Shown here: piece by piece, positions 37,236 through 62,225 of the stretch
Layout of the letters: every line of letters starts with the position of its first letter
Position numbering within the stretch: position 1 is the stretch's first letter
Assembly: GCA_002104945.1 (NCBI GenBank)
Contig: MCFH01000015.1
Coordinates: 248,001 to 312,000, forward strand
Direction of reading: 5' to 3'
Length of the DNA stretch: 64,000 bases
Source: Piromyces finnis finn
Lineage: Eukaryota > Fungi > Neocallimastigomycota
Translations under genes and position numbers: made by a program
The notes under the pieces: generated by a model
What the model was told of the DNA's origin: nothing
Databases searched by the model: none
The model's input: the letters and a program-made list of their open reading frames with translations, nothing else

Positions 37236-39051
37236 TTTTTTTCTTTTGTCGATTAATAATAAAATAATACATTTTTTATGGTAAAAAAAAAAAAAACTAA
37301 TATTTTAAATGGATTTTGATAGTATAATAATATATGTATATTAGGTATATAATGTATATAATATGTATAAACTATTTTAGTATTATTTCAAAATAGTTGA
37401 AATATTCTTAATTTTATAGTTTTATATATATATATATATTATTATCTTTCTCTATATAATAATTCTTTTTATTATCAACCCTAGTTTTCTAAATTATCTT
37501 TGACTATTTTTTTTATTAAAATCGTTAAAAAAGTTCATATATTTAAAGATAAAAAAAATTCATATAATGCATATATATCATGCAAAATCGACAAATAGAA
37601 ATTTTAATTATTTTATTAATATTTGGATTGAAATCTTTAAAAATAAATATATATAAAATATATAATATTATATAATATTATATAATATATAGGTTAAGAT
37701 AGATACAAATATTATTTTCTAATATTTTTACTTTAAAATCATATATAAATCTGTAATAGATAATGAAAGAAAGAAAGAAAGAAAAAAAAACTTGGGTTTA
37801 TAATAAAAATTTACATTTATTACTATTATTTAAAATATTGATATTGACTGTAATGAACGTCTATTTATATATAATAAATATATTAAAAAAAAAATAAAAG
37901 ATTGTTACTATTATTTCTAATTATTATTGTTATTACTGTTATTATTTGTCATTACTTTTGTGTATGGGTGTATATTTTGAGGTAAAATGAAAATTTCAAC
38001 TTACTTTTTTTTTTTTTTATTATTTTTATCCTTATTTATTTGAATAATATTCTGATTTGAATTTTATGGTAGTTCTTAATTTATATAATATGGTTTCAAT
38101 TTCGGGTTTTTTATCGGTGATTAAAACATCTAAAATGGTATACATATGTAAAATACGGTGTAATCGATGAATATAATCATTATATTGAACATTTGTATCA
38201 TTTTGAGTAGAAAATGGATTAATAATTTCATTTAATCTAGCTGTAATAGGAATAATAGTTATATCTCTATACATTCTTAGTGTTAATTCGATAATATCTA
38301 TATTTTCTGAATATGGATATTGTTTCAAAGGAACAAACATTGCTCGAAGATAAGGAATAATTCTACTGTATAATAAAATCCATTGATCGACAACACAGGC
38401 CATAACATCATCACTTTTTTCCATGGAATTAATTCGATTACTAATGGTATTCATTCCTGTAATTAAACTATCCGAAACATTACGAACAAAAACCTCTTCT
38501 ACAAAATTTGGATCTTGAATCAAATGTTTGACTTCATCATTAATTTCTTCAATCGAGTATTTTAACTGTTTATCTTCGAATAAAATACGAATGGCAGCTT
38601 GAACAGATTTCCAAACTCTGGCATAACTCATTTCATTGTTAATAATTTCACTGGTCTTAAAAAAATTTGATGAAGGAGAGGATGAAAATTTTTGAGAAAT
38701 TCGACGAGTAACATTATTTAAATTTATGGATGATAAACTAGTTGGAATTCCAGGAGTAATGGACATAGAAGAACTAATTGGTAAATTAACTGAAGATATT
38801 TTTTCTTTTGTCTATTCATCATATAATAATACATTTTTTTTTATGGTATGGTAAAAAAAAAAAAAAAAATTAATATTTTAAATGAGTTTTAATAGTATCA
38901 TATTAGGTATATCAGGTATATAATGAATATGTATAAACTATTTTAGTATTATTTCAAAATAGTTGAAATATTCTTAATTTTATAATTTTTTTTCATATAT
39001 ATTTCATATATATTATTATCTTTCTCTATATAATAATTCTTTTTATTATTA
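37236..39051. repeat. Diverged direct repeats of about 240 bp (37236-37475 and 38799-39051) bracketing an HbrB gene
   Basis: Shared blocks TTTTCTTTTGTC, ATAATACATTTTTT.ATGGT, AATATGTATAAACTATTTTAGTATTATTTCAAAATAGTTGAAATATTCTTAATTTTATA and ATTATCTTTCTCTATATA occur in the same order in both copies. Confidence 0.8.
38032..38766 (-). CDS. HbrB-like domain protein (Bit61/PRR5 TORC2-subunit family), divergent paralog
   Basis: RVWKSVQAAIRILFE...SIEEINDEVK...LITGM...VVDQWILLYSRIIPYLRAMFVPL...LRMYRDITIIP aligns with the neighbouring 305-aa ORF and the recalled HbrB pattern. Confidence 0.7.
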   Translation of the reverse strand: MSITPGIPTSLSSINLNNVTRRISQKFSSSPSSNFFKTSEIINNEMSYARVWKSVQAAIRILFEDKQLKYSIEEINDEVKHLIQDPNFVEEVFVRNVSDSLITGMNTISNRINSMEKSDDVMACVVDQWILLYSRIIPYLRAMFVPLKQYPYSENIDIIELTLRMYRDITIIPITARLNEIINPFSTQNDTNVQYNDYIHRLHRILHMYTILDVLITDKKPEIETILYKLRTTIKFKSEYYSNK

Positions 39052-40155: not shown

Positions 40156-41073
40156 TTAATATTGTAATTCAGTTAATGGATATTTTTTGGTCTTTTTTAG
40201 TGAAATATAAGACATACGGTTATTACCATTGGTATTAGCTCTTAATATCTTTAATACATTATAGATAGATTGTTGTTTTTCATCCAAAATACCGTATAAA
40301 ATAGATAACATTTGTATGAATCGTCCTGAAATCGTATTAAATTGCGGGTCTATTGGAATTTTTCCTGTAAATTGCATATTTAATACTTCTTCAATACGAT
40401 CAATATTTGGTAATATAACAAAATCTCTGAAACAAGTAAATGCCATTCTTGGTATATCAAGAATACTGTATCTTGGGTCGAAAGAAAGAGGTAAAAAAAT
40501 ACCTTTAATGTAAGGCATAATAGAATCAAAGAAAAATGTCCATATTTCCACTAGACGTGAAATTAAAGAATTATCCGTCACTTCTATAAGCTTTGTATTA
40601 ATAGTGTAAATACCATTTTTTAATAATTCATTAATGTTGTAAGCAAGTGTTTTAGGAGTTTTTACTTCCATGCAACGTTTAACCAAATCATTTAAATCTT
40701 CGATAAAGTCTTGTAAACCTTGACCGTTAAATAACGGTAATACTTTAATACATATAATATGCCAGTTATCTTTAATGTTTGTTTCTGAATAGTTAATATC
40801 TTTGTTTAAACTTGCTGAATCAAGTTCACTAATACTTTTTAATATATTTGCTGAAGAGGCTACAGTACCGTGATCCATTATATTATTAAATGACGATAAA
40901 TTTGGTATACTTCTTTTCGATATTTTTCTTACTGGTCCAAATAAAGGAGAAGAAGAAAATGTTGTACTATTTTTAGAACTTAACGAATTCATTGAGTTTG
41001 CTGTTTGAAGTTGACCGGAAGGTCTTCTCAATAACTGAGTTGACGGTTTTAGATTTAATATTTTTTTTTCCAT
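40156..41073 (-). CDS. HbrB-like domain protein (Bit61/PRR5 TORC2-subunit family)
   Basis: DNWHIICIKVLPLFNGQGLQDFIEDLNDLV...LLKNGI...LISRLVEIWTFFFDSIMPYIKGIFLPL...AFTCFRDFVILP...GRFIQMLSIL, after a Ser-rich N-terminus. Confidence 0.82.
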   Translation of the reverse strand: MEKKILNLKPSTQLLRRPSGQLQTANSMNSLSSKNSTTFSSSPLFGPVRKISKRSIPNLSSFNNIMDHGTVASSANILKSISELDSASLNKDINYSETNIKDNWHIICIKVLPLFNGQGLQDFIEDLNDLVKRCMEVKTPKTLAYNINELLKNGIYTINTKLIEVTDNSLISRLVEIWTFFFDSIMPYIKGIFLPLSFDPRYSILDIPRMAFTCFRDFVILPNIDRIEEVLNMQFTGKIPIDPQFNTISGRFIQMLSILYGILDEKQQSIYNVLKILRANTNGNNRMSYISLKKTKKYPLTELQY

Positions 41074-42305
41074 TTTATAATAATAATATTATTGTTAGTG
41101 GTAGTATAGTTGTTGTTGTTGTTGTTGGTATGGTTTAATCTAAGCTTTGATAATAAATCTTTATTTTGGAATTTTGTTTTTTTTTTTTATTCTACAAATA
41201 TACTCTCTTCTGAATATACATTAAAAACAGTTTTCGTTGCTAATTATCTTTCTTTTTTTTTTTTTTTTTTGTTTTTAATTTATATTTTTTAATATTTTCT
41301 TTTTTTTTTTTTTAAAAAAAAAAATAAATAAATAATAATATAAATGAAAAGATTTTTATTATTTTTTTTTAAAAAAAAAAATTTATTCAACCTATAATTA
41401 CAATAACCATCTATTATAATAAATAAATAAATAAATAAAAGAATCTAAAATACAATAATTACTTTCTTGTCTTTCTTTCTTTTATATAACTACCGCCGTT
41501 TTTTATTATTTATTTATTATTTTTTATTAAAAAAAAAAAAAGTTTTTTATTTATTTATTTGATTTATTCATTTATATTATTAAAAATTTTATATTAAAAA
41601 TAAAATTCAAATTTTATTTATTTTTGGATTATTTCTATTTAATTAAAAAAAAAAGGTAACATACACCCAAAGTAAAGTAAAAAAGAATAGAGAAAATATG
41701 GGTTTAATTTTTTCTTTCATTTACATTTACATGTATAGACAATGAATAATAACACACAAAGAATTGTTTATATATATATTAATATATTTTATTTATTTAA
41801 TTGCTTGTTTAATAGTAATATAATATGAAGAAAAAAAAAAAAAAGGAATTAAAAATAAAGAAATTTTTTTTTTTTAAAAAAAAAGAGCATGAAAAGAATC
41901 ATATCGTTATAATATTATCTTTTTTTTTTTTTCTTCCATCATCATTACTATTACTCTTTTTTTTTTTTTTTTTTTTTTTTTTTATCTTTTCATTAATACA
42001 ATTGAATATAATTTAAATGTCTTTTTTTTTTATCCTTTATTTTTTAGATCCTTTCAACTTTTTTTTTTTTTTTTTTTTTATAATAAAAACCATATTTGAT
42101 TAAAAATAATATAAAAAATGGGAAATAGATATTAAAATAGATCAATAATATATTTATAAGCATATTATTGAACTGAAAATGATATTATAATACTTTTTTT
42201 TTTTTTTGTTTGTTTTCCATTGGTAATACACATATTATATACATATATATGCGTACATATATATATATTTTCCTTACTAAATATGTCTTGTTAAAAAAAA
42301 AATGC

Positions 42306-44150
42306 CTATTTTCTTGATCTACTTCTTGTTCTGCTTCTGGATCTGGAATAGCTTCTTGCGCGAGTTTTTCTTTTTGGTGAATAGCTACGTCTTCTTGATC
42401 TACTTCTGGTGAGACTTCTAGATCTACTTCTACTACTGCTTCTAGAGGATCGGCTGAAACTACGTGATAAACTACGAGAATAGCTTCTTCTACGGCTTCT
42501 GCTTCTACTTAAACTTCTGCTAAAGCTTCTACTACTTCTGCTACTAATACTACTGCTACGTCCTCTTCTTCTAGTATTAGCGCTATTATTTAATGGACGA
42601 GCGCGTGGTCTTGATCTTGATCTACGACCCTTGCTACGACTTCTAGAGTATGAAGAAATAGATGAGTAGGATGAAGATCTACTTCTTCTTCTACTATATC
42701 TTCTTCTATTACGTGAAATTGATCTAGATCTAGTACGAGATCTTCCTCTTCTTCTTATTGGACTCTTTCTTCTAATTGGTCTACGATTATCATAATTTGG
42801 TCTGTAATGATCACTTGATGTTGCTGGTCTTCTTCTAGTAATAGATGGAGATCTACGAGTAACAGCTGGTGCTCTTCTTTCTATAGCATAACTACATGAA
42901 ATAACAGAACCATCAATTTGAGCTTCATTCATATAACGAATACTGTTCTTTGCAGCATCAGACGTTTCAAAGGATATAAATGCATATCCTCTAGAGCAAC
43001 CCACTAATTATGTTGAAATTAAATTTTAAAATTATAATAAAAAGAAGAATAAAAAATAGAGAGAGTTTGGTTAATCATATGGATAATACATATAGTATTT
43101 GATATTTATAAAAAGAAAATAAAATATTTATGAATTAGGATAACAGTTAATTTGTTTTAGTGCTGAGTAATAAACTCAAAATTTATATATATAAAATGGT
43201 GATTTAATCTATATAGATAATAAAAAATAATGAATAGATAGTGACATTATTCTTTATGAGTAGATTATAAAAATTCTAAATATTGACATGATAATAACTA
43301 TATACTATAATTTTGTTAAAAGTATTCCTGTTTAATATTCCTGTTTTTTCATTATTATACTCTATTAAATCCTTTTTTTTTTTTTAGTGAATTTCAAAAA
43401 AAAAAAAAAAAAAAAAACTGATATTATTCATTTATAAAAAGATCAAATAATCATCCATGTTTAATTCATATTTTTTTTTTAATTTCAAATTTCATTATAT
43501 TTACATTTTCTATCAATTGGAAGATCTAAGCTTGTAATTGTTCCATAGACTCCAAATATTTCTCTTAAATGGTCTACATTAACATTTTTTGTTAGTTTCT
43601 TTACAATAATTCTTGTATTTCTTGATCTTGAATCACTTCTACTTCTTTTTCTGGAATTGGAACGAGATGAATTTCTAGTTTTTGAAAAAGATTTTGAACG
43701 AGATCTTGATGATCTTAAAGAACGAGAGCGGGAGCGGGAACGGGAACGTGTGCGGGAACGTGTGCGAGAACGTGAACGTGAAATAGAGACTGAACGTGAC
43801 ATTGATAAGCTACGATTTCTGGAAACAGATCTTGATTTTGACCTCGATCTTTTTTACATGAACAAATATATTATATATTATTTTTATTATTTTTTTGTTG
43901 TTGTTGTTGAAAAGATGTGAAATTTTTTGAAAATTGTAAAAACGTTTAAATTATTATGGTGTAACAAAAATAGGCATGTATTTTAAGATAATGAAACATA
44001 ATAAACACATTGAAAAACAATATAAAATTAATATTTTATCTCACTTTAGTAACATTTTAGAATAATTAATAAATTACGTTAACCAATTTTTATAATTTAC
44101 CTAGATTCCTTTTTAGTTTTTTCACCTGCTGAGGTACTTTTTTTATCCAT
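42306..44150 (-). CDS. RNPS1: RNPS1-like RS-RRM-RS splicing / exon-junction-complex protein; 3 exons
   Basis: Exon 1 MDKKSTSAGEKTKKES|gt. Exon 2 RS repeats plus TRIIVKKLTKNVNVDHLREIFGVYG...LDLPIDRK. Exon 3 SRGYAFISFETSDAAKNSIRYMNEAQIDG plus a long RS tail. Confidence 0.8.
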
Positions 44151-47641: not shown

Positions 47642-48637
47642 TTATTCTTTTTTATAATTTTCCAAGATTTCAATAATATCAATTAATTGTTCTTGTTTCG
47701 CCACGTCCAAAGCGGTAAGTTGACAATCATCTTTTAAATTAGGATCAGCACCATGATCAAGTAATAACTTGACCACATCTGCATGATCAAAATAACTTGC
47801 AAAATGAAGAGGTGTCATTAAATGATGTGTGATAGCATTTACATCAGCTTTTTTCTCCAATAAATATTTAGCAATTTCAAAACAACCTTGATGACAAGCA
47901 ATATGAAGAGGTGTCCAACCATCATCTGTAACATAATTAATATTGGCATTAAATGATATAAGAAGTTTTACGATAGGTAAACATTTATCATCTTCACACA
48001 TTAAATGTAAAGCGGTATAGTTACATCTTGTTGTATAATTAACTTTAACTCCAGATTCTAAAAGTTCTTTAATTTTTTGCATATTCATTCGTTTGATTTC
48101 GTATATAAAAAGCATTGCTTTTTGAAGTTCTGTTTGAATATTTTGTAAAGGATAACCTAAACTTAAGAAAAGTTCCACACCTTCAATATTATGTCTAAAA
48201 CAAAGAACTCTGAAAGGATCATAATCATAATTTGTTTTTGAATATAAATCTGCTTTATGATTTATTAATACTTCAATAATATCATTTCTACCGGTGGAAC
48301 AAGCCACGTATAATGGAGTTTCCCCATTTTTATTTTTAATATTAATATCTGCACCATGACTTAATAAACTTTCTACAATATGTGTATTATTCTGGGTACA
48401 AGCAATGTGTAAGGCGGTTTCCCCTTCTTCATTTTGATTATTAATATTAATGCAAGGTTCGGAAAGTAAAAAATCAACAACATCAGTTCTTTCTCTACTA
48501 CATGCATATTCTAATCCGGTTTTTCCTTTCTTATCTCTTCGATTAATATTAACCTTATTTTTATTGACAACGGTTTTAACCTTTTCAATATAACCTTCTC
48601 TACAATTTTCTAAAAATTTATTGTAGGTTCTAGCCAT
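47642..48637 (-). CDS. Intronless ankyrin-repeat protein (331 aa)
   Basis: GETALHIAC, GETPLYVAC, GWTPLHIACHQG and TPLHFASYFDHADVVKLLLDHGAD. Confidence 0.95.
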   Translation of the reverse strand: MARTYNKFLENCREGYIEKVKTVVNKNKVNINRRDKKGKTGLEYACSRERTDVVDFLLSEPCININNQNEEGETALHIACTQNNTHIVESLLSHGADINIKNKNGETPLYVACSTGRNDIIEVLINHKADLYSKTNYDYDPFRVLCFRHNIEGVELFLSLGYPLQNIQTELQKAMLFIYEIKRMNMQKIKELLESGVKVNYTTRCNYTALHLMCEDDKCLPIVKLLISFNANINYVTDDGWTPLHIACHQGCFEIAKYLLEKKADVNAITHHLMTPLHFASYFDHADVVKLLLDHGADPNLKDDCQLTALDVAKQEQLIDIIEILENYKKE

Positions 48638-51113
48638 TTTTTTTTTTAAAAAAAAATAATAATAATAAACTTTGATAGATAGATAGACAGATAGATAGAT
48701 TTTTTTATAAAGATATTTGAAATATTTAACTTTTTTTTTTTATTATTATTATGTTGTAATAATTATATATATATTTGACTTTTAATATTAAAATATTTAA
48801 TTATTTTTTTTTTCTTGTTATTGTTGAGAGGTATAGTTACAATTAAGAATTAACTTTTTTTTTTTACTTCTTTATATATTTATTATTTATGACTATATAT
48901 CAAAATTGAGATAACAGATAGAAAAGAGCTTTCTTTTTTTTTTTTTTTTTGATATTGAATATTTAACAATAGAATATAATGAATAATTATAAAACAGATA
49001 GAAAATGGAAATTCCTTGATTTTGTATTTAATATTAAGAATAGTATTGAAATATTTTTGTTTTTATTTTTTTTTTTTAAATAATAATTATAATAATAATT
49101 TTTAAATAAATTGATAATACTCCAAAAAGGTAATATATGATACGACTCCTTTTATATCTATTTTATAAAAATTATCTAATTGTATAATTGAGGATTTTTT
49201 TTATTTTTATTTTACAATATATAGAGCTATTATTTCATATTAATTGTTGTATTGAATAGCATTTTAATAATACTTTATTTTTTAGTGTTGTTATAAAAGA
49301 AGATAAGAATTTAAATAGATTTTTACACACCTTTTTTTTTTCCATAAAAATAAGGATATAATATACTAAAATATCAATTAAATAATTATATAGATTTATA
49401 TATATTTTAATATTTTTTTTTCTTAATATATTATTTTAAAAAAAAAATATTTGTATTTTTAAAATTGATAATTCTTTTATGGAATAATAAAAAAATATTA
49501 TTTATTTAGTTATTCATTTTAGAACAAGTTTTTTTTTTTTTAAAATTTCAAAAAAAGTCAAAAAACATCTTTCAGTTCTTAAAATTTAATTTTTATTATT
49601 TATATTAAAATTAATTTTTTAAAGTTTTTTAATATAAAAAAAAATATTATAAAAAATAAAAAAATAAAAATAATTAATAGCATAGTCACACACACTTCAT
49701 TTCTTATGGTATATTGGGGTAGGTAGCATCTTATGATAAATTCATTACATAAGCAAGTGATGAAACGATAATAATAAAAGATTAGGATCCTTTCCTTTAT
49801 ATGGAATAAAATTAAATACATTAAAATTATATTTTTTTTTTCTTTAATTTCTTTAATGAAAAAATGTTTTAAAATTCGATTTCATTTTTACATCATTTCT
49901 TTTTTTTCTTTCCTTTAAATAACATTTTCAATAAAAAAAAAAACTTTTTTTTCCTTCGCTTTAAATTACAAAAACTTTTCTAAAATATTTTTTTTTATTT
50001 TTTTTTTAAATTTTAAAAATAAAAATTAATTTATTTTTTATTAATTTAATATGATTTTTTAATTTATTATTTTTTATTTAAAAAAAATCACAATTTCAAA
50101 ATTAATAATTAAAATTTTAATTTTGTACCACCTGAAAAAAAAAAGGGAATTTTTACCACAAATCCTGGGAAGAAAAAAAAGGTCACTTGAATAATTATTT
50201 TTAAACTAGTTTAATATTTTTTATTTTATAAAGAAAGGATTTAATATTTCAAATAATAAATATATATATTTATATTCATTTATTTATTTTATTTTATTCA
50301 TGAGATTTAAAAAAAACAATTAATAAAAAATGGTTAAAAATTAAATAATTAAAGGTTTTAAAAAAAAAATAATGCCACATGATCCAGTAATAATCCAATA
50401 CCACCTACAGGAAGTAAAAAAAATATTATAATATGAATTAATAATTATAGAAAAAAAACAGATTACTTTTCAATAAGTATATTAAATTGTAATGTATTAA
50501 ATACTAAATTTTATAATAAAAATAAATATGTTCCTTTTTATTATTATTAAAATTATTAAGTTATTATTAATGTTTAAAGTAATGCATTTAAATTTTTTGT
50601 TTAATTAATTAATTAATTAATTATTTATTTATTTATTTATTTATTTATAATTTAAATTATATAAATTTTGTAATTGCTATAGTAATTACAATTATAATTA
50701 TAATTATAATTATATAATTAATAAGAAATAATGAAATTTATTATTCTTTAATTATAATTGAAAGGACACAAAAAAAAAATAACTATGTTAAATTAGATCG
50801 AAAGGAAATCATTTTTTTGTTAATTAGAACATAAAAAAAAAATAATTATGTTCATTAAAATTTTATATGCTTTTAATTATATAATCTATAATCTTTATAT
50901 GGTAATTATATAATTCATTTGTAATTATTAAATTAGCTGTATAATTAAACATCAACCCTTCCTAGGAAGTAATTGAATTTTTTTTTTTAAAAAAAAAAAG
51001 AATATATAAAAGGAAGGAAGTTGTTTTTAAATTTTTTTTCTATATTCTTTATTTTTAATATCAAAAAGAAAATATACACATAAATAATATACTATTAATC
51101 AAATAAAAAAAAA

Positions 51114-51521
51114 ATGAATCTTAAAAATTTATTCCTTTATACTTTAACTTTAGCTGCCACTGCTTCCTCTCTTCCATTAGAAGTAGAACCAAATGAAAGT
51201 GATGTTATTTTGATTGAACCTCAGGTTGAAGAAACTGCTGTTATAAATGAAATTGAACCACCATTAAAAAGAGATTTTGATCATTCTAAAATTTTCCCCA
51301 TTGAATTCGAAGATAAGGTTAAGGATGAATTAAGATCAGAGGAAGAAAATATTGAAAAAAGAGGTATTAGAAAATCAAAAACAAAATCTATTATTGAAAG
51401 AAGAGCTGCTAAGAAAGCAAAAAAGCAAAGACGTAATTTTGAAAGAAGAATTGCCAAAAAAGCCAAAAAACAAAGACGTCTTCAAAGAAGAGCTGCTAAG
51501 AAAGCTGCTAAAAAATATTAA
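51114..51521 (+). CDS. Secreted precursor with acidic pro-region, dibasic (Kex2-type) sites and a highly cationic repetitive C-terminus
   Basis: Signal MNLKNLFLYTLTLAATASS; PLKR and IEKR sites; tail GIRKSKTKSIIERR-AAKKAKKQRR-NFERR-IAKKAKKQRR-LQRR-AAKKAAKKY. TATAAA-like box near 51005. Confidence 0.8.
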   Translation: MNLKNLFLYTLTLAATASSLPLEVEPNESDVILIEPQVEETAVINEIEPPLKRDFDHSKIFPIEFEDKVKDELRSEEENIEKRGIRKSKTKSIIERRAAKKAKKQRRNFERRIAKKAKKQRRLQRRAAKKAAKKY

Positions 51522-51974
51522 AATGTAAATATAGAATTAAATAAAAAAAAATCCAGTTTCATAAAATATAAAAATTAAAAAAAAAAAATTAAAAAAAAAA
51601 ATAAAAAAACATATCTATAAATAAATAAATAATATATTAAAAAAAGGTTTAAAATATTATAGTTTAAAAAAATGAAAAAATGAAATTAAAGTGTATGTGT
51701 ACTTTATCTTTTAACAAAACAATTTTTATTTTTTTAAAAATATTTATATAAAGTTTTACGAAAAAAATGATATAGATACATATAATAATTCTAAAAACAT
51801 TTTAAAAAAGTTTTTATACACTATATTAGTAATTTAGGTATGTTAAATTATTACTTTTAATATGAATCGTAAAACATAATAAGGAATAACTTTACATTTT
51901 AAAAAAATAATTTTAAATGTATTCCATTGAAATATATTTAGGATCATCTTTTTTCTTTAAATTAATTCTTATTC

Positions 51975-52024
<50 letters not shown>

Positions 52025-52478
52025 TTGTAAATTTTAAAAATAGCATTTAATATTGAATACACTTAAATATTTATAATTCCTTCAATATGAAATAAATCTC
52101 TTTTTTTTTTTTTAAATTAGAAATAGTTCAATAAATCCTATATATAATCTTCAGTAAAAAATATCATTCCATATTTTTTTTTCCTTTTTCTTATCATCCA
52201 TATTAAATTTAATATACTTCTATATAATATATAATATTTCTTTTTAGACCTTTTAAACTTGTTTTTATTTATAAAAAAAAAAGGAAAGAAAAAAGAAAAT
52301 CAAATGATTCTTTTTCTATTCATTCATATTTCATTAGAATTATTCCTATTCAATAAAAAAAATAGATTTTTTAGTATATTTAGAACTATTAAAAATATTA
52401 TATTACAAATATACCATTTTTCATTTATTTTTTTTAACCTTTTTTTTTTTTTTCTTTTCGAATAATTATAGGATCACT

Positions 52479-52608
52479 TAGTCAATATTTCAAATAAATA
52501 AAATAAAATAAAAAAAAAGTAATTATTAAATAAAATAAATGTAGTCAATATTTCAAATAAATAAAATAAAATAAAAAAAAAAAGTAATTATTAAATAAAA
52601 TAAATGTA
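52479..52608. repeat. 63-bp tandem duplication between the two precursor genes
   Basis: TAGTCAATATTTCAAATAAATAAAATAAAATAAAAAAAA..GTAATTATTAAATAAAATAAATG starts at 52479 and 52542. Confidence 0.85.
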
Positions 52609-53065
52609 AATTAAATGTTCTAATATGCCAATATTAGATGCACTGGTTACACTATCAACATTATAATTAATGATTTAATCAGTTAAATATAGTAACTTTT
52701 ATTTTTTTTTTAATAATTGAAAAATCATTAGAACAAATCATTTTTTTAAACTTTAATCAATTATTAATGATAATGAAACTTGTACTTGTTGCTTTTTTTT
52801 TTTTATAATTATTAAAACCTACTAAATATAACTTTAATAAAAAATATTATTAATATAGATTATTATTATTAATACTTTTTTTTATATACTATATTAAACT
52901 TTATATTTTTTTTTTTCCATTAATTCTTTTAATAAAAAAAAACATATAAAAGAAAGGAATCTTTTCTTTTTTTTTAGAATTATAATTAAAAATATTAATT
53001 TTTTAATTATTTATTTTTTTTTATATAAAAAAAATATACCCATTAAAGCATTAAAACAACAAAAA

Positions 53066-53821
53066 ATGAACTTTAAGAATATTAGTTTATTTCTTTTTGC
53101 TTTAAATTTAGCTTCAGCTCATTTTCATTCATTAGAAAATGAACCAAATAGTATTGTTTTTAGTGATACCCATATTGAATTACTATCCAAAAGAAATCCT
53201 CTCTTATTAAATACTTTTAAAACTGAATTAAATAGTATTTTTATTGAAAATGAAAAAGATATTGAATCCAATGATGCTCTTGAAAAAAGAGCTGTTAGGA
53301 AGTTAAAGCCAATCAAAAGTCAAGGCCGCAGTATTGAACCAAGAGGTATGAAAGTTACTACTAAAAAGGCAGCTAAAAAGCAAAAACGTAATATTGAATC
53401 CGATTCCTCAAGTAAATTAAATGACAATCACATTTTTAATGAGAATGAAATCGGTTTACCCTCCAAAAAAAGTTTACTCTTATTAAATACTTTTAAAACT
53501 GAATTAAATGGTATTTCAACTGAAGAAAAAGAAATTGAATCCATTGATATTCTTGAAAAAAGAGCTGTTGCTAAAAAGGCTGCTAAAGCAGCTAAAAAGC
53601 AAAGACGCAGCGAAGTTGAATTATTATCAAAAAGAAGCCCTCTTTTATTAAATACTTTTAAAACTGAATTAAATGAAATTTCAACTGAAGATGAAGAAAT
53701 TGAATCCATTGATACTCTTGAAAAAAGAGCTGTTAGGAAGTTAAAGCCAATCAAAAGTCAAGGCCGCAGTATTGAACCAAGAGCTATGAAAGCTGCTAAG
53801 AAAGCTGAAAAAAAAAATTAG
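53066..53821 (+). CDS. Secreted multi-repeat Kex2-type precursor: three acidic spacer plus cationic segment units
   Basis: Signal MNFKNISLFLFALNLASA; three copies of LLLNTFKTELN...IES.D.LEKR, each followed by a basic segment. TATAAAAG near 52945. Confidence 0.82.
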   Translation: MNFKNISLFLFALNLASAHFHSLENEPNSIVFSDTHIELLSKRNPLLLNTFKTELNSIFIENEKDIESNDALEKRAVRKLKPIKSQGRSIEPRGMKVTTKKAAKKQKRNIESDSSSKLNDNHIFNENEIGLPSKKSLLLLNTFKTELNGISTEEKEIESIDILEKRAVAKKAAKAAKKQRRSEVELLSKRSPLLLNTFKTELNEISTEDEEIESIDTLEKRAVRKLKPIKSQGRSIEPRAMKAAKKAEKKN

Positions 53822-54143
53822 AAAAAAAATAAAAAAAAAAAAATTTCAAAATATAGATTTAAAATAAAAGTTGTTTAGTATTTAAGTAAAATATATATAT
53901 ATATATATAATAAAATACCATAATTTAAAGTGTACGTAAATATTATTAAAAAAATAAAAGTTAGAAAAAACAAAAATTTTAAAAGCGTCATGTTAATATT
54001 TCAAAAAAAAACAAAAATTTAAAAGTGTCATGTTAATATTTCAAAAAAATTAAAGTGTTTTAATAGTTCATTTACATATTTTTATGTTTTTTATTATTTT
54101 TAATAAAAGTTTCAACAAAGTCATTTAGATATATTTTATACAA

Positions 54144-61043: not shown

Positions 61044-62225
61044 CTAGAACTTGTTAATGAATTCCCAAGTAGCTTGTGGAACCCAAGATTGGTATTGACC
61101 TGGGTCCTTGTGATCCCAAAGGTGACCACCAGATTGAGTACACCAACGAACTGGGAAACGTTGGTCAACAGTCTTGTAATCGTAACACTTGTGTGGACCT
61201 CCTGGAGTAGCTTCTTCAGCTCTTTCCTTAACGGCAGCACCGTTTTCGGAGTTGTGTTCTAAGATGATATCACGAGCGTGACGACCCATTTCTGGAGTAC
61301 AGAGACCATCATCGAAACCAAGAACACCCATCCAACCAATTGGTTCACCAGTGTGCTTTGGAAGCCAGATGTTACGTTCAGCAGTTTCGTAAACGGCAAC
61401 ACCACGGAGAACCTTTTGGTGGTTCCAGGAAAGACCGTTAGAGAACATAGAACCGTAACTGAAACCAGTAGAGAAGACACGGGATTCATCAATACAGAGA
61501 TCACCCTTTAACTTGGCAAGAAGTTCATCGAACATGTAGTAATCAGCTTCACCCCATGGGAGTTGTTGACCGTTACCTTCTGGAGCAACGAAAATGGTAG
61601 TCTTACCAGTATCTAATGGCTTTAAACCATAGTAACCTTCTTGTTGGACACCTCCGGCCCAACCGCCCATACAGTGCATACCGAAGACTAAACGGTATGG
61701 CTTGCTCTTATCATAGTTATCTGGGATATCAATACGGACAGTACGCTTGTTGTTACCCCATTTGAATTCAAAGGAACCAGTCTTTGGAAGACTTAAGTTC
61801 TTACCACAACCAGATGATGGAACTGGAGTGTTCTTTAAAGCGTAACCGAAACTGTAAGTTGGTTCTTGTGGTTGTTGTTGTTGTTGGTTGTTGTTGTTGT
61901 TGTTACCAGAGCTGGAGCTGGAGTTAATACCACACCATTCATTATTTTCAATACCCCACTTACCATCATTATCAGTTAAAACAACTTCAGTGGTGGTCTT
62001 ACAACATGGGTAATTTAAGGCATTGGCCCAGCAAGAAGTAGCGGCTTGACCATTTGGCATACCACACCATTGACCATTTTCAACACCCCACTTACCATCG
62101 CTATCAGTGTAAACGACTATATTACCATTACAGCATGGATAACCAAGCTTTTGGGAGAAACAAGAGGCAGCAGAAGCCTTGGCTGCGACAGCAGCAATTG
62201 CAGTTAAAACGACAGCGAATTTCAT
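61044..62225 (-). CDS. Cellulosomal carbohydrate esterase (CE1, feruloyl/acetylxylan esterase-like) with two N-terminal fungal dockerin (CBM10-like) domains; intronless
   Basis: Signal peptide; dockerins [11 protein letters not shown]...[10 protein letters not shown] and [11 protein letters not shown]...[10 protein letters not shown]; S/N/Q linker; catalytic domain PSSGCGK...RLVFGMH...IFVAPEG...[15 protein letters not shown] (GxSxG)...GGHLW...TWEFINKF. Confidence 0.92.

Follow-up and report, generated by a model that had tools for sequence, protein, structure and literature searches.

We looked at a small gene, hereafter gene A, which lies at positions 51114-51521 of a 64,000-nucleotide (nt) stretch of contig MCFH01000015.1 from the anaerobic gut fungus Piromyces finnis (Neocallimastigomycota). 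This whole stretch is called the window, and all positions below refer to it. Gene A is a real gene, and we propose that its product is a small pre-pro-protein of the secretory pathway, belonging to the Kex2-processed repeat proteins (KEPs) and putatively cut into Lys/Ala peptides, a proposal whose chances we regard as about evenly balanced. Reading the product as a precursor is reasonable, and is supported by the statistics of the candidate cleavage sites, by a tandem paralogue (gene B, 53066-53821) and by the protease families encoded in the same genome. The case for reading its short peptides as antimicrobial is weak. As judged from sequence searches, gene A is restricted to the lineage of this fungus within the public protein space that was covered.

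Layout of the gene A protein and its candidate processing sites

The gene and the modules of its predicted product are as follows.

51114-51521, plus strand: gene A, complete single-exon coding sequence of 135 codons and a TAA stop, recognized from its open reading frame (ORF), its GC/codon-position signature and its codon log-odds
51114-51170, plus strand: predicted signal peptide, residues 1-19 (MNLKN / LFLYTLTLAAT / ASS), with an n/h/c layout and putative cleavage after S19
51171-51272, plus strand: Pro/Glu-rich acidic pro-segment, residues 20-53, ending at the KR53 site (PLKR|D) and predicted to be without regular structure
51273-51362, plus strand: acidic module of 30 amino acids (aa), residues 54-83, net charge -5, bracketed by KR53 and KR83 (IEKR|G), with a predicted helix at 63-83
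51363-51404, plus strand: first cationic piece, GIRKSKTKSIIE followed by RR97, residues 84-97, aligning with AVRKLKPIKSQGRSIEPR of gene B
51405-51434, plus strand: Lys/Ala repeat 1, AAKKAKKQ followed by RR107, residues 98-107, a member of the 40-nt repeat family D5
51435-51449, plus strand: linker NFE followed by RR112, residues 108-112, F109 being P4 of the RR112 site
51450-51479, plus strand: Lys/Ala repeat 2, IAKKAKKQ followed by RR122, residues 113-122, a family D5 repeat
51480-51491, plus strand: linker LQ followed by RR126, residues 123-126, L123 being P4 of the RR126 site
51492-51518, plus strand: Lys/Ala repeat 3, AAKKAAKKY, residues 127-135, forming the C-terminus, its DNA homologous to the 3' end of gene B (family D4)

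By rule, the N-terminus carries K4, a hydrophobic core of 12-15 residues running from residue 6 to 16-20, and A17 and S19 at positions -3 and -1. The 10-residue Kyte-Doolittle maximum of this core is 1.89, compared with 0.1-1.3 in five non-signal-like ORFs of the window, and a signal-like start, MNxKN...LFL...LA.A, is common to genes A and B. A signal peptide is plausible from these features. Residues 20-83 hold 15 Glu and 5 Asp against 8 Lys/Arg, for a net charge of -12, while the 52-residue tail that follows EKR (81-83) holds 15 Lys, 11 Arg, 9 Ala and 2 Glu, for a net charge of +24. The preliminary description of this DNA, made from the letters alone, had counted 26 Lys/Arg and 2 Glu in the tail by hand, and the exact recount gave the same figures. 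The three repeats that it saw divided by RR were likewise found, at 98-105, 113-120 and 127-135. To this we add the KR52-53 site, the first cationic piece GIRKSKTKSIIE-RR and the mini-linkers NFE-RR and LQ-RR. At the DNA level, a 40-nt unit is present in three copies within gene A, the second being 85% and the third 70% identical to the first. Between repeats 1 and 2, four codon changes are synonymous and one is non-synonymous, which gives a hint of purifying selection.

To be recognized as a KEP, a protein should have a signal peptide and three or more internal repeats with KR or RR (or KK) between them (PMC6339444). In gene A, the three repeats are AAKKAKKQ, IAKKAKKQ and AAKKAAKKY; RR97, RR107, RR112, RR122 and RR126 flank every one of them, with KR53 and KR83 lying upstream. 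Under the lax form of the definition, which accepts KK, it has to be kept in mind that the gene A repeats themselves contain KK. Kex2 accepts almost exclusively Arg at P1 (PMC8528282). We observed that 12 of the 14 Arg of the gene A protein occupy P1 or P2 of a dibasic site, with Lys filling the peptide interiors. When the Lys and Arg labels were shuffled among the tail's 26 basic positions, at least five RR pairs arose in 0.15% of trials (p about 0.0015), and at most one mixed KR/RK pair in 0.26%. This partition fits a kexin site, because Arg is nearly exclusive at P1 of Kex2, whereas a purely electrostatic tail would be indifferent to which of the two basic residues is used. Gene A would be a clean example of Arg used for cleavage and Lys used for cargo.

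The residues further upstream of the sites were also looked at. Yeast Kex2 has a dual preference for aliphatic and basic residues at P4. At six of the seven sites of gene A, P4 is I, I, K, F, K and L, that is, aliphatic/aromatic or Lys. The tail has seven bulky residues, and three of these fill its three non-basic P4 positions (post hoc, p about 0.013). The NFE and LQ linkers make sense as P4 donors, since this pattern fits the Kex2 preference. The pattern also fits the extended LxxR motif of Kex2 sites (PMC8528282).

The proteases that such a pathway would use have candidates in the P. finnis genome. The P-domain PF01483 was found at three loci, one of the ORFs carrying Peptidase_S8 as well, and the genome also encodes S10 carboxypeptidases and a DPPIV_N-family protein. 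After Kex2 cleavage, Ste13 strips X-Ala and X-Pro dipeptides (PMC6339444). Every Lys/Ala repeat of gene A opens with X-Ala after RR (AA, IA and AA, encoded at 51405-51410, 51450-51455 and 51492-51497), and the sole residue that differs between repeats 1 and 2 sits in this dipeptide, so that once trimmed both would read KKAKKQ. Two acidic 31-mers of gene B, out of three, open with X-Pro (NP and SP, at 53195-53200 and 53636-53641) after SKR. We regard this possible signature of Ste13-type trimming in both genes as a lead. Altogether, the order of signal, acidic pro-piece, dibasic site and cationic peptide that the preliminary description had recognized is supported by the kexin-like genes, by the placement of Arg at the sites and by the retention of these sites in gene B.

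On this basis, the following pathway can be proposed. The signal peptide (1-19) would direct entry into the endoplasmic reticulum, and a kexin-like convertase of the late Golgi would cut after KR53, KR83, RR97, RR107, RR112, RR122 and RR126. A Kex1-like carboxypeptidase would then trim the C-terminal basic residues, and a Ste13-like dipeptidyl aminopeptidase may strip the leading X-Ala of each repeat. This processing would release an acidic peptide of some 28 residues together with GIRKSKTKSIIE, AAKKAKKQ, IAKKAKKQ and AAKKAAKKY, or, if Ste13-trimmed, two copies of KKAKKQ and one KKAAKKY. For peptides so extremely polar and polycationic, electrostatic binding to polyanions (microbial envelopes, nucleic acids, pectin) or signalling is the most likely predicted activity, rather than membrane lysis.

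Coding evidence, the paralogue gene B and orphan status

Gene A stands out from its surroundings by composition. Its GC content is 29.7%, against 13% in both flanks (15-33% in the window), with 43, 34 and 12.5% at the first, second and third codon positions. For codon usage, we used a log-odds model trained on seven long ORFs of the window, of which six carry Pfam domains (two ankyrin, two HbrB, one CBM_10 and one Peptidase_S8). The in-frame score of gene A was +0.97 bit per codon, within the 0.52-1.66 of the training ORFs; at the same locus, the other sense frames gave -0.36 and -0.78, and the opposite strand +0.29 at most. The tail of gene A ranked first in Lys/Arg density among the 8,724 stop-free 52-aa windows in the six frames of the window, followed by poly-A tracts and by the arginine/serine-rich (RS) domain of an SR-type splicing factor. 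Since the ORF stands alone, isolated by more than 1 kb of 13%-GC DNA on each side, gene A was read as single-exon.

Gene B lies downstream of gene A on the same strand.

53066-53821, plus strand: gene B, tandem paralogue of 251 aa, with three acidic/cationic cassettes and KR/RR boundaries

BLASTP aligned the two proteins at 33% identity over 129 aa (E = 0.004, composition-adjusted). The alignment spans the MN(L/F)KN..LFL start, LE.EPN, EKR-(G/A)-(I/V)-RK and KKA.KKQ(R/K)RN(F/I)E. In each cassette of gene B, a cationic module comes after an acidic 31-mer whose last residues are LEKR; gene A has a single cassette, which aligns with all three, and EKR is invariant in the four. Despite the low identity, the site positions SKR/LKR, EKR, EPR/ERR and QKR/QRR are kept between the two genes. 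At the DNA level, gene B holds a 78%-identical copy of the 40-nt unit of gene A (family D5), the pair shares homology at the 3' ends (family D4), and the acidic 31-mers of gene B repeat three times at 63-85% identity (family D1).

Within gene B, cassettes 1 and 3 have in common a 138-nt stretch of 85% identity (53256-53393 and 53694-53831). This suggests a recent intragenic duplication or conversion, because the run encoding AVRKLKPIKSQGRSIEPR reads identically in both copies. The deposited model of gene B has 247 aa and spans 98% of the 251-aa ORF, with a slight difference at one end. Other repeats were seen around the pair: a 63-nt unit is present twice upstream of gene B (52479-52608) and a 40-nt unit twice downstream of it (53965-54044), and the interval from gene A to gene B contains an (ATT)n microsatellite at 51962-52027.

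Homologues were looked for in several protein and DNA collections. An exhaustive HMMER search of gene A against 1.84 billion representatives returned the query only, as did, for both genes, a word-indexed search of 5.8 billion proteins. Metagenome contigs of the Joint Genome Institute (JGI), scanned with gene A and with the A/B alignment, gave no matches beyond the genes themselves. In the P. finnis genome, searches with A, with B and with a degenerate DNA pattern for AKKAKKQRR detected only the pair, and a four-cassette profile run over the 56-Mb assembly (56,455,805 bases, 232 contigs) likewise detected genes A and B only. Gene B had no Pfam match. Some weak hits were set aside: a match in the same genome at E = 1.4, on contig C157, was taken as noise; a Pfam scan of gene A up to E 10 gave a lone sub-threshold match to Birna_VP3, which was uninformative; in the Protein Data Bank (PDB) sequence search, Mdv1 (E = 0.29) was dismissed as chance; and the ESM Atlas returned no feature matches, its structure matches being generic long helices (TonB, DivIVA, coiled coils) and equally uninformative. 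By sequence, the A/B pair is an orphan within public protein space. The homologue search that the preliminary description had called for found none outside the fungus's own genome in these collections; homology to a structural protein, which would have spoken against that description, was not found.

Upstream of each gene of the pair, we detected a TATA-like element.

51004-51019, plus strand: TATA-like 16-mer ATATAAAAGGAAGGAA, putative core promoter of gene A, 95 nt upstream of the ATG
52944-52959, plus strand: TATA-like 16-mer ATATAAAAGAAAGGAA of gene B, matching the pattern ATATAAAAGRAAGGAA

The window has two exact matches to ATATAAAAGRAAGGAA, one for gene A and one for gene B, each placed about 100 nt upstream of the ATG. 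Only 0.10 matches are expected per window, and three matches, counting a third with one mismatch, were reached in 0 of 100 shuffles. The copies of genes A and B would function as core promoters. The one-mismatch copy is at 41472-41487 on the minus strand, about 400 nt upstream of the HbrB-like ORF 40159-41073, and the 16-mer may be a general core-promoter word of the fungus instead of an element specific to the pair. Downstream, both genes are followed by the motif TTAAAGTGTAYGT (51686-51698 and 53925-53937, plus strand, 165 and 104 nt past the stops of genes A and B). Its sharing was not significant in the window, two matches arising in 8 of 100 shuffles; it could be a 3'-end signal.

In the neighbourhood, ORFs carry ankyrin, long interspersed nuclear element (LINE) reverse-transcriptase and CBM_10 domains (Pfam); the flanking genes are an ankyrin gene at 47645-48637 and a dockerin (CBM_10) gene at 61047-62225. 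Further away, an HbrB-like domain (PF08539) is present in two adjacent minus-strand ORFs, 38035-38766 (E = 6e-19) and 40159-41073 (E = 2e-37), an apparent tandem duplication. At 42309-43853 on the minus strand, one RNA recognition motif (RRM) is split over the ORFs 43488-43802 and 42309-43004, each adjoining a long Arg/Ser-rich run. This arrangement is read as an SR-type splicing-factor gene whose RRM is interrupted by an intron.

Alternative readings of the precursor and significance

Several points weigh against a KEP-type precursor. The three repeats stem from one duplication, so that the Lys/Arg, P4 and codon statistics rest on few independent events. The h-region, at 1.89, is only moderately hydrophobic, three clearly secreted proteins of the window reaching 2.7-2.9. 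In the protein and metagenome searches, there was no homologue beyond the fungus's own genome to show conservation. Linear Lys/Arg peptides would presumably be short-lived in a protease-rich gut. Finally, AlphaFold2, run on the single sequence, places all RR sites within one uninterrupted helix, 87-134 (block-mean pLDDT 78-97), and cleavage would be disfavoured inside a continuous helix if that helix is real in solution.

This last point leads to the question of whether the tail is cut at all, which is pivotal for function. The protein might be secreted with its 52-residue tail uncut, or cut at most at KR83, so that the whole tail would act as an H1-like polycationic helix with an Ala stripe, coating polyanions such as bacterial and archaeal envelopes, extracellular DNA or plant pectin; it could then be antimicrobial or adhesive. 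We consider this unlikely, though worth keeping in sight. In its favour, besides the predicted helix, is a hydrophobic moment of 0.43 at 100 degrees over the 52 residues, with Ala on one face. Antimicrobial activity is also known for Lys/Ala-rich C-terminal fragments of histone H1 such as oncorhyncin II (PMC9720293), while for such a role the 8-mers seem too short and too polar. However, an electrostatic tail has no need to confine Arg to paired sites with a hydrophobic residue or Lys at P4. The NFE and LQ linkers find their sense as P4 donors, the module boundaries are kept in gene B, and the helix, being a single-sequence prediction for a +24 peptide, may be absent in solution.

If the tail is cut, the cargo might still be a different one. 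The acidic 30-mer (54-83) could be the bioactive product, for example a signalling peptide, and the cationic modules its spacers or charge-balancing chaperones. This is in keeping with its KR brackets on both sides, with the triple occurrence of its 31-mer counterpart in gene B (63-85% DNA identity) and with the X-Pro openings after SKR, of the Ste13 type, in two of these. Yet the acidic module is poorly conserved between A and B, the best conserved segments being EKR-G/A-I/V-RK and AAKK.KKQ-R/K-R-N-F/I-E, and the unit that gene A has triplicated is the cationic one. We hold this reading to be very improbable. Cyclised peptides of the RiPP class, which are made on ribosomes and modified after translation, are not indicated either, because no UstYa/DUF3328 (PF11807) gene was found in the P. 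finnis genome, in a search run without a positive control. Ustiloxin-type (dikaritin) RiPPs have UstYa near the gene and a Tyr in the core; gene A does not fit this pattern, the neighbouring ORFs carrying ankyrin, LINE reverse-transcriptase and CBM_10 domains and the sole Tyr being the C-terminal residue.

The preliminary description had assigned to the released Lys/Ala peptides antibacterial, anti-archaeal or polyanion-binding roles in the rumen. As classical membrane-active antimicrobial peptides (AMPs), they would act on gut bacteria and methanogens while the acidic pro-piece shields the producer. The precursor plan does resemble that of AMP polyproteins, e.g., Ib-AMP (PMC10136942), and each repeat peptide has a net charge of +4, the tail as a whole +24. 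The other properties do not follow. Amphipathic helical AMPs contain roughly a third or more of bulky hydrophobic residues and have a length suited to act on a bilayer. The gene A peptides have such a charge but lack the hydrophobic face and the length: they are of 8-9 aa, with 0-12% bulky hydrophobics and a mean Eisenberg hydrophobicity of -0.36 to -0.62, whereas amphipathic peptides put through the same calculation for reference have 29-52% bulky residues. For the whole tail, the figures are 13% and a mean hydrophobicity of -0.80. As to masking, the charges of the acidic piece and the tail do not neutralise each other (-12 against +24), and the prediction of a complex between the acidic piece 54-83 and the tail 84-135 scored 0.02, a value that speaks neither for nor against it. 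Moreover, a published survey of anaerobic-fungal AMPs found bacteriocin-like genes only, in other species (PMC8106346). We therefore see no support for masking, nor for antibacterial or anti-archaeal Lys/Ala peptides of this kind, and give the membrane-active reading a slim chance. Of the suggested roles, polyanion binding stands as physically plausible; 'rumen' was inexact, P. finnis having come from horse faeces (PMC8106346).

It might also be asked whether the pair has any selected function. Gene A could be an ORF of young, lineage-specific origin that possibly arose in A-rich low-complexity DNA before being duplicated, with little or no expression or without secretion, its dibasic pattern a by-product of repeat duplication. 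The lack of homologues outside the tandem pair and the moderate strength of the signal peptide would agree with this, and A-rich DNA readily encodes Lys-rich peptides, the other Lys-rich open stretches of the window being poly-A tracts. Against it, both paralogues keep at 33% identity an open frame, a signal-like start, the cassette plan, the TATA-like motif and normal codon usage. In addition, synonymous differences outnumber non-synonymous ones between repeats 1 and 2, and Ala codons (GCT/GCC) are costly where non-coding DNA has 13% GC. This origin without function appears improbable to us.

Coming back to the KEP-type precursor, its interest lies in the setting. In the herbivore gut, bacteria and archaea outnumber the anaerobic fungi, and the means by which these fungi persist are poorly known. 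Their natural products have been surveyed, and the AMPs reported were bacteriocin-like only, maybe derived from rumen bacteria or protozoa, with none in P. finnis (PMC8106346). A home-grown family of Kex2-processed cationic peptides, if real, would represent a new class of interaction molecules and provide a simple set of peptides that can be synthesised. In the boldest version, genes A and B would form a system of polycationic peptides, ribosomally made and kexin-processed, that is the first of its kind in Neocallimastigomycota. It would be a species-specific and fast-evolving secreted weapon or adhesive, consisting of the Lys/Ala peptides or of the uncut H1-like tail, with which the fungus competes with, or organises, bacteria and methanogens on plant particles. 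We judge this a long shot; if true, the sequence class would be unlike any catalogued AMP, possibly with a de novo origin in A-rich DNA. If gene A is merely another orphan KEP, it would add one more case to the diverse, mostly genus-specific KEP cores (PMC7329392).

Comparison with known systems

The closest likeness is with KEPs, whose prototype is MF-alpha-1 of Saccharomyces cerevisiae (PMC6339444, PMC7329392). Behind its putative signal peptide, gene A has in common with them a pro-region and at least three near-identical short peptides separated by KR/RR, X-Ala after the dibasic site, and kexin, S10 and DPPIV-type families in the genome. KEPs occur widely and are of extreme diversity, most of them being specific to a genus (PMC7329392), and gene A, like most KEP types, is confined to one genus or species. 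Unlike them, it has a core of nearly pure Lys/Ala without an aromatic or hydrophobic recognition motif, an alternation of acidic and basic modules, and three repeats only. Among the catalogued KEPs that could be compared, none had sequence homology to gene A. Its peptide strings did not occur in the supplement of one KEP survey (Le Marquer 2019, PMC6339444) or in the available part of the list of the other (PMC7329392); the latter, Umemura 2020, counts 7 KEPs in P. finnis, and gene A may or may not be among these.

The alternation of modules recalls Ib-AMP of Impatiens balsamina, in which one transcript encodes a signal peptide and basic peptides set between acidic propeptides of 16-35 residues (PMC10136942). 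Genes A and B alternate acidic and basic modules in the same way. The plant peptides, however, are Cys-stabilised loops of 20 residues, while those of gene A are Cys-free Lys/Ala 8-9-mers accompanied by one acidic module, and there is no homology between them. An uncut tail would rather resemble the Lys/Ala-rich polycationic C-terminal fragments of histone H1 (oncorhyncin II; PMC9720293). These come from a nuclear protein with a globular domain; in contrast, gene A has a signal-like N-terminus, paired Arg sites and no Pro. A linker-histone domain was not found in gene A in the Pfam scan to E 10, and it does not qualify as a linker histone H1.

Two other fungal systems processed by Kex2 have a hydrophobic cargo. 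About half of the residues of candidalysin are bulky hydrophobics (52% when scored), against 0-12% in the gene A peptides. Its precursor, the secreted Ece1 of Candida albicans, is cut by Kex2 at KR into several peptides, of which candidalysin is the one acting on foreign membranes (PMC7329392); gene A has no homology to Ece1. Rep1 of Ustilago maydis is a Kex2-processed repeat protein yielding water-repellent peptides that are held on the fungal surface, with no pheromone role (PMC7329392). The gene A peptides are extremely hydrophilic; for them, too, a surface-bound role is possible.

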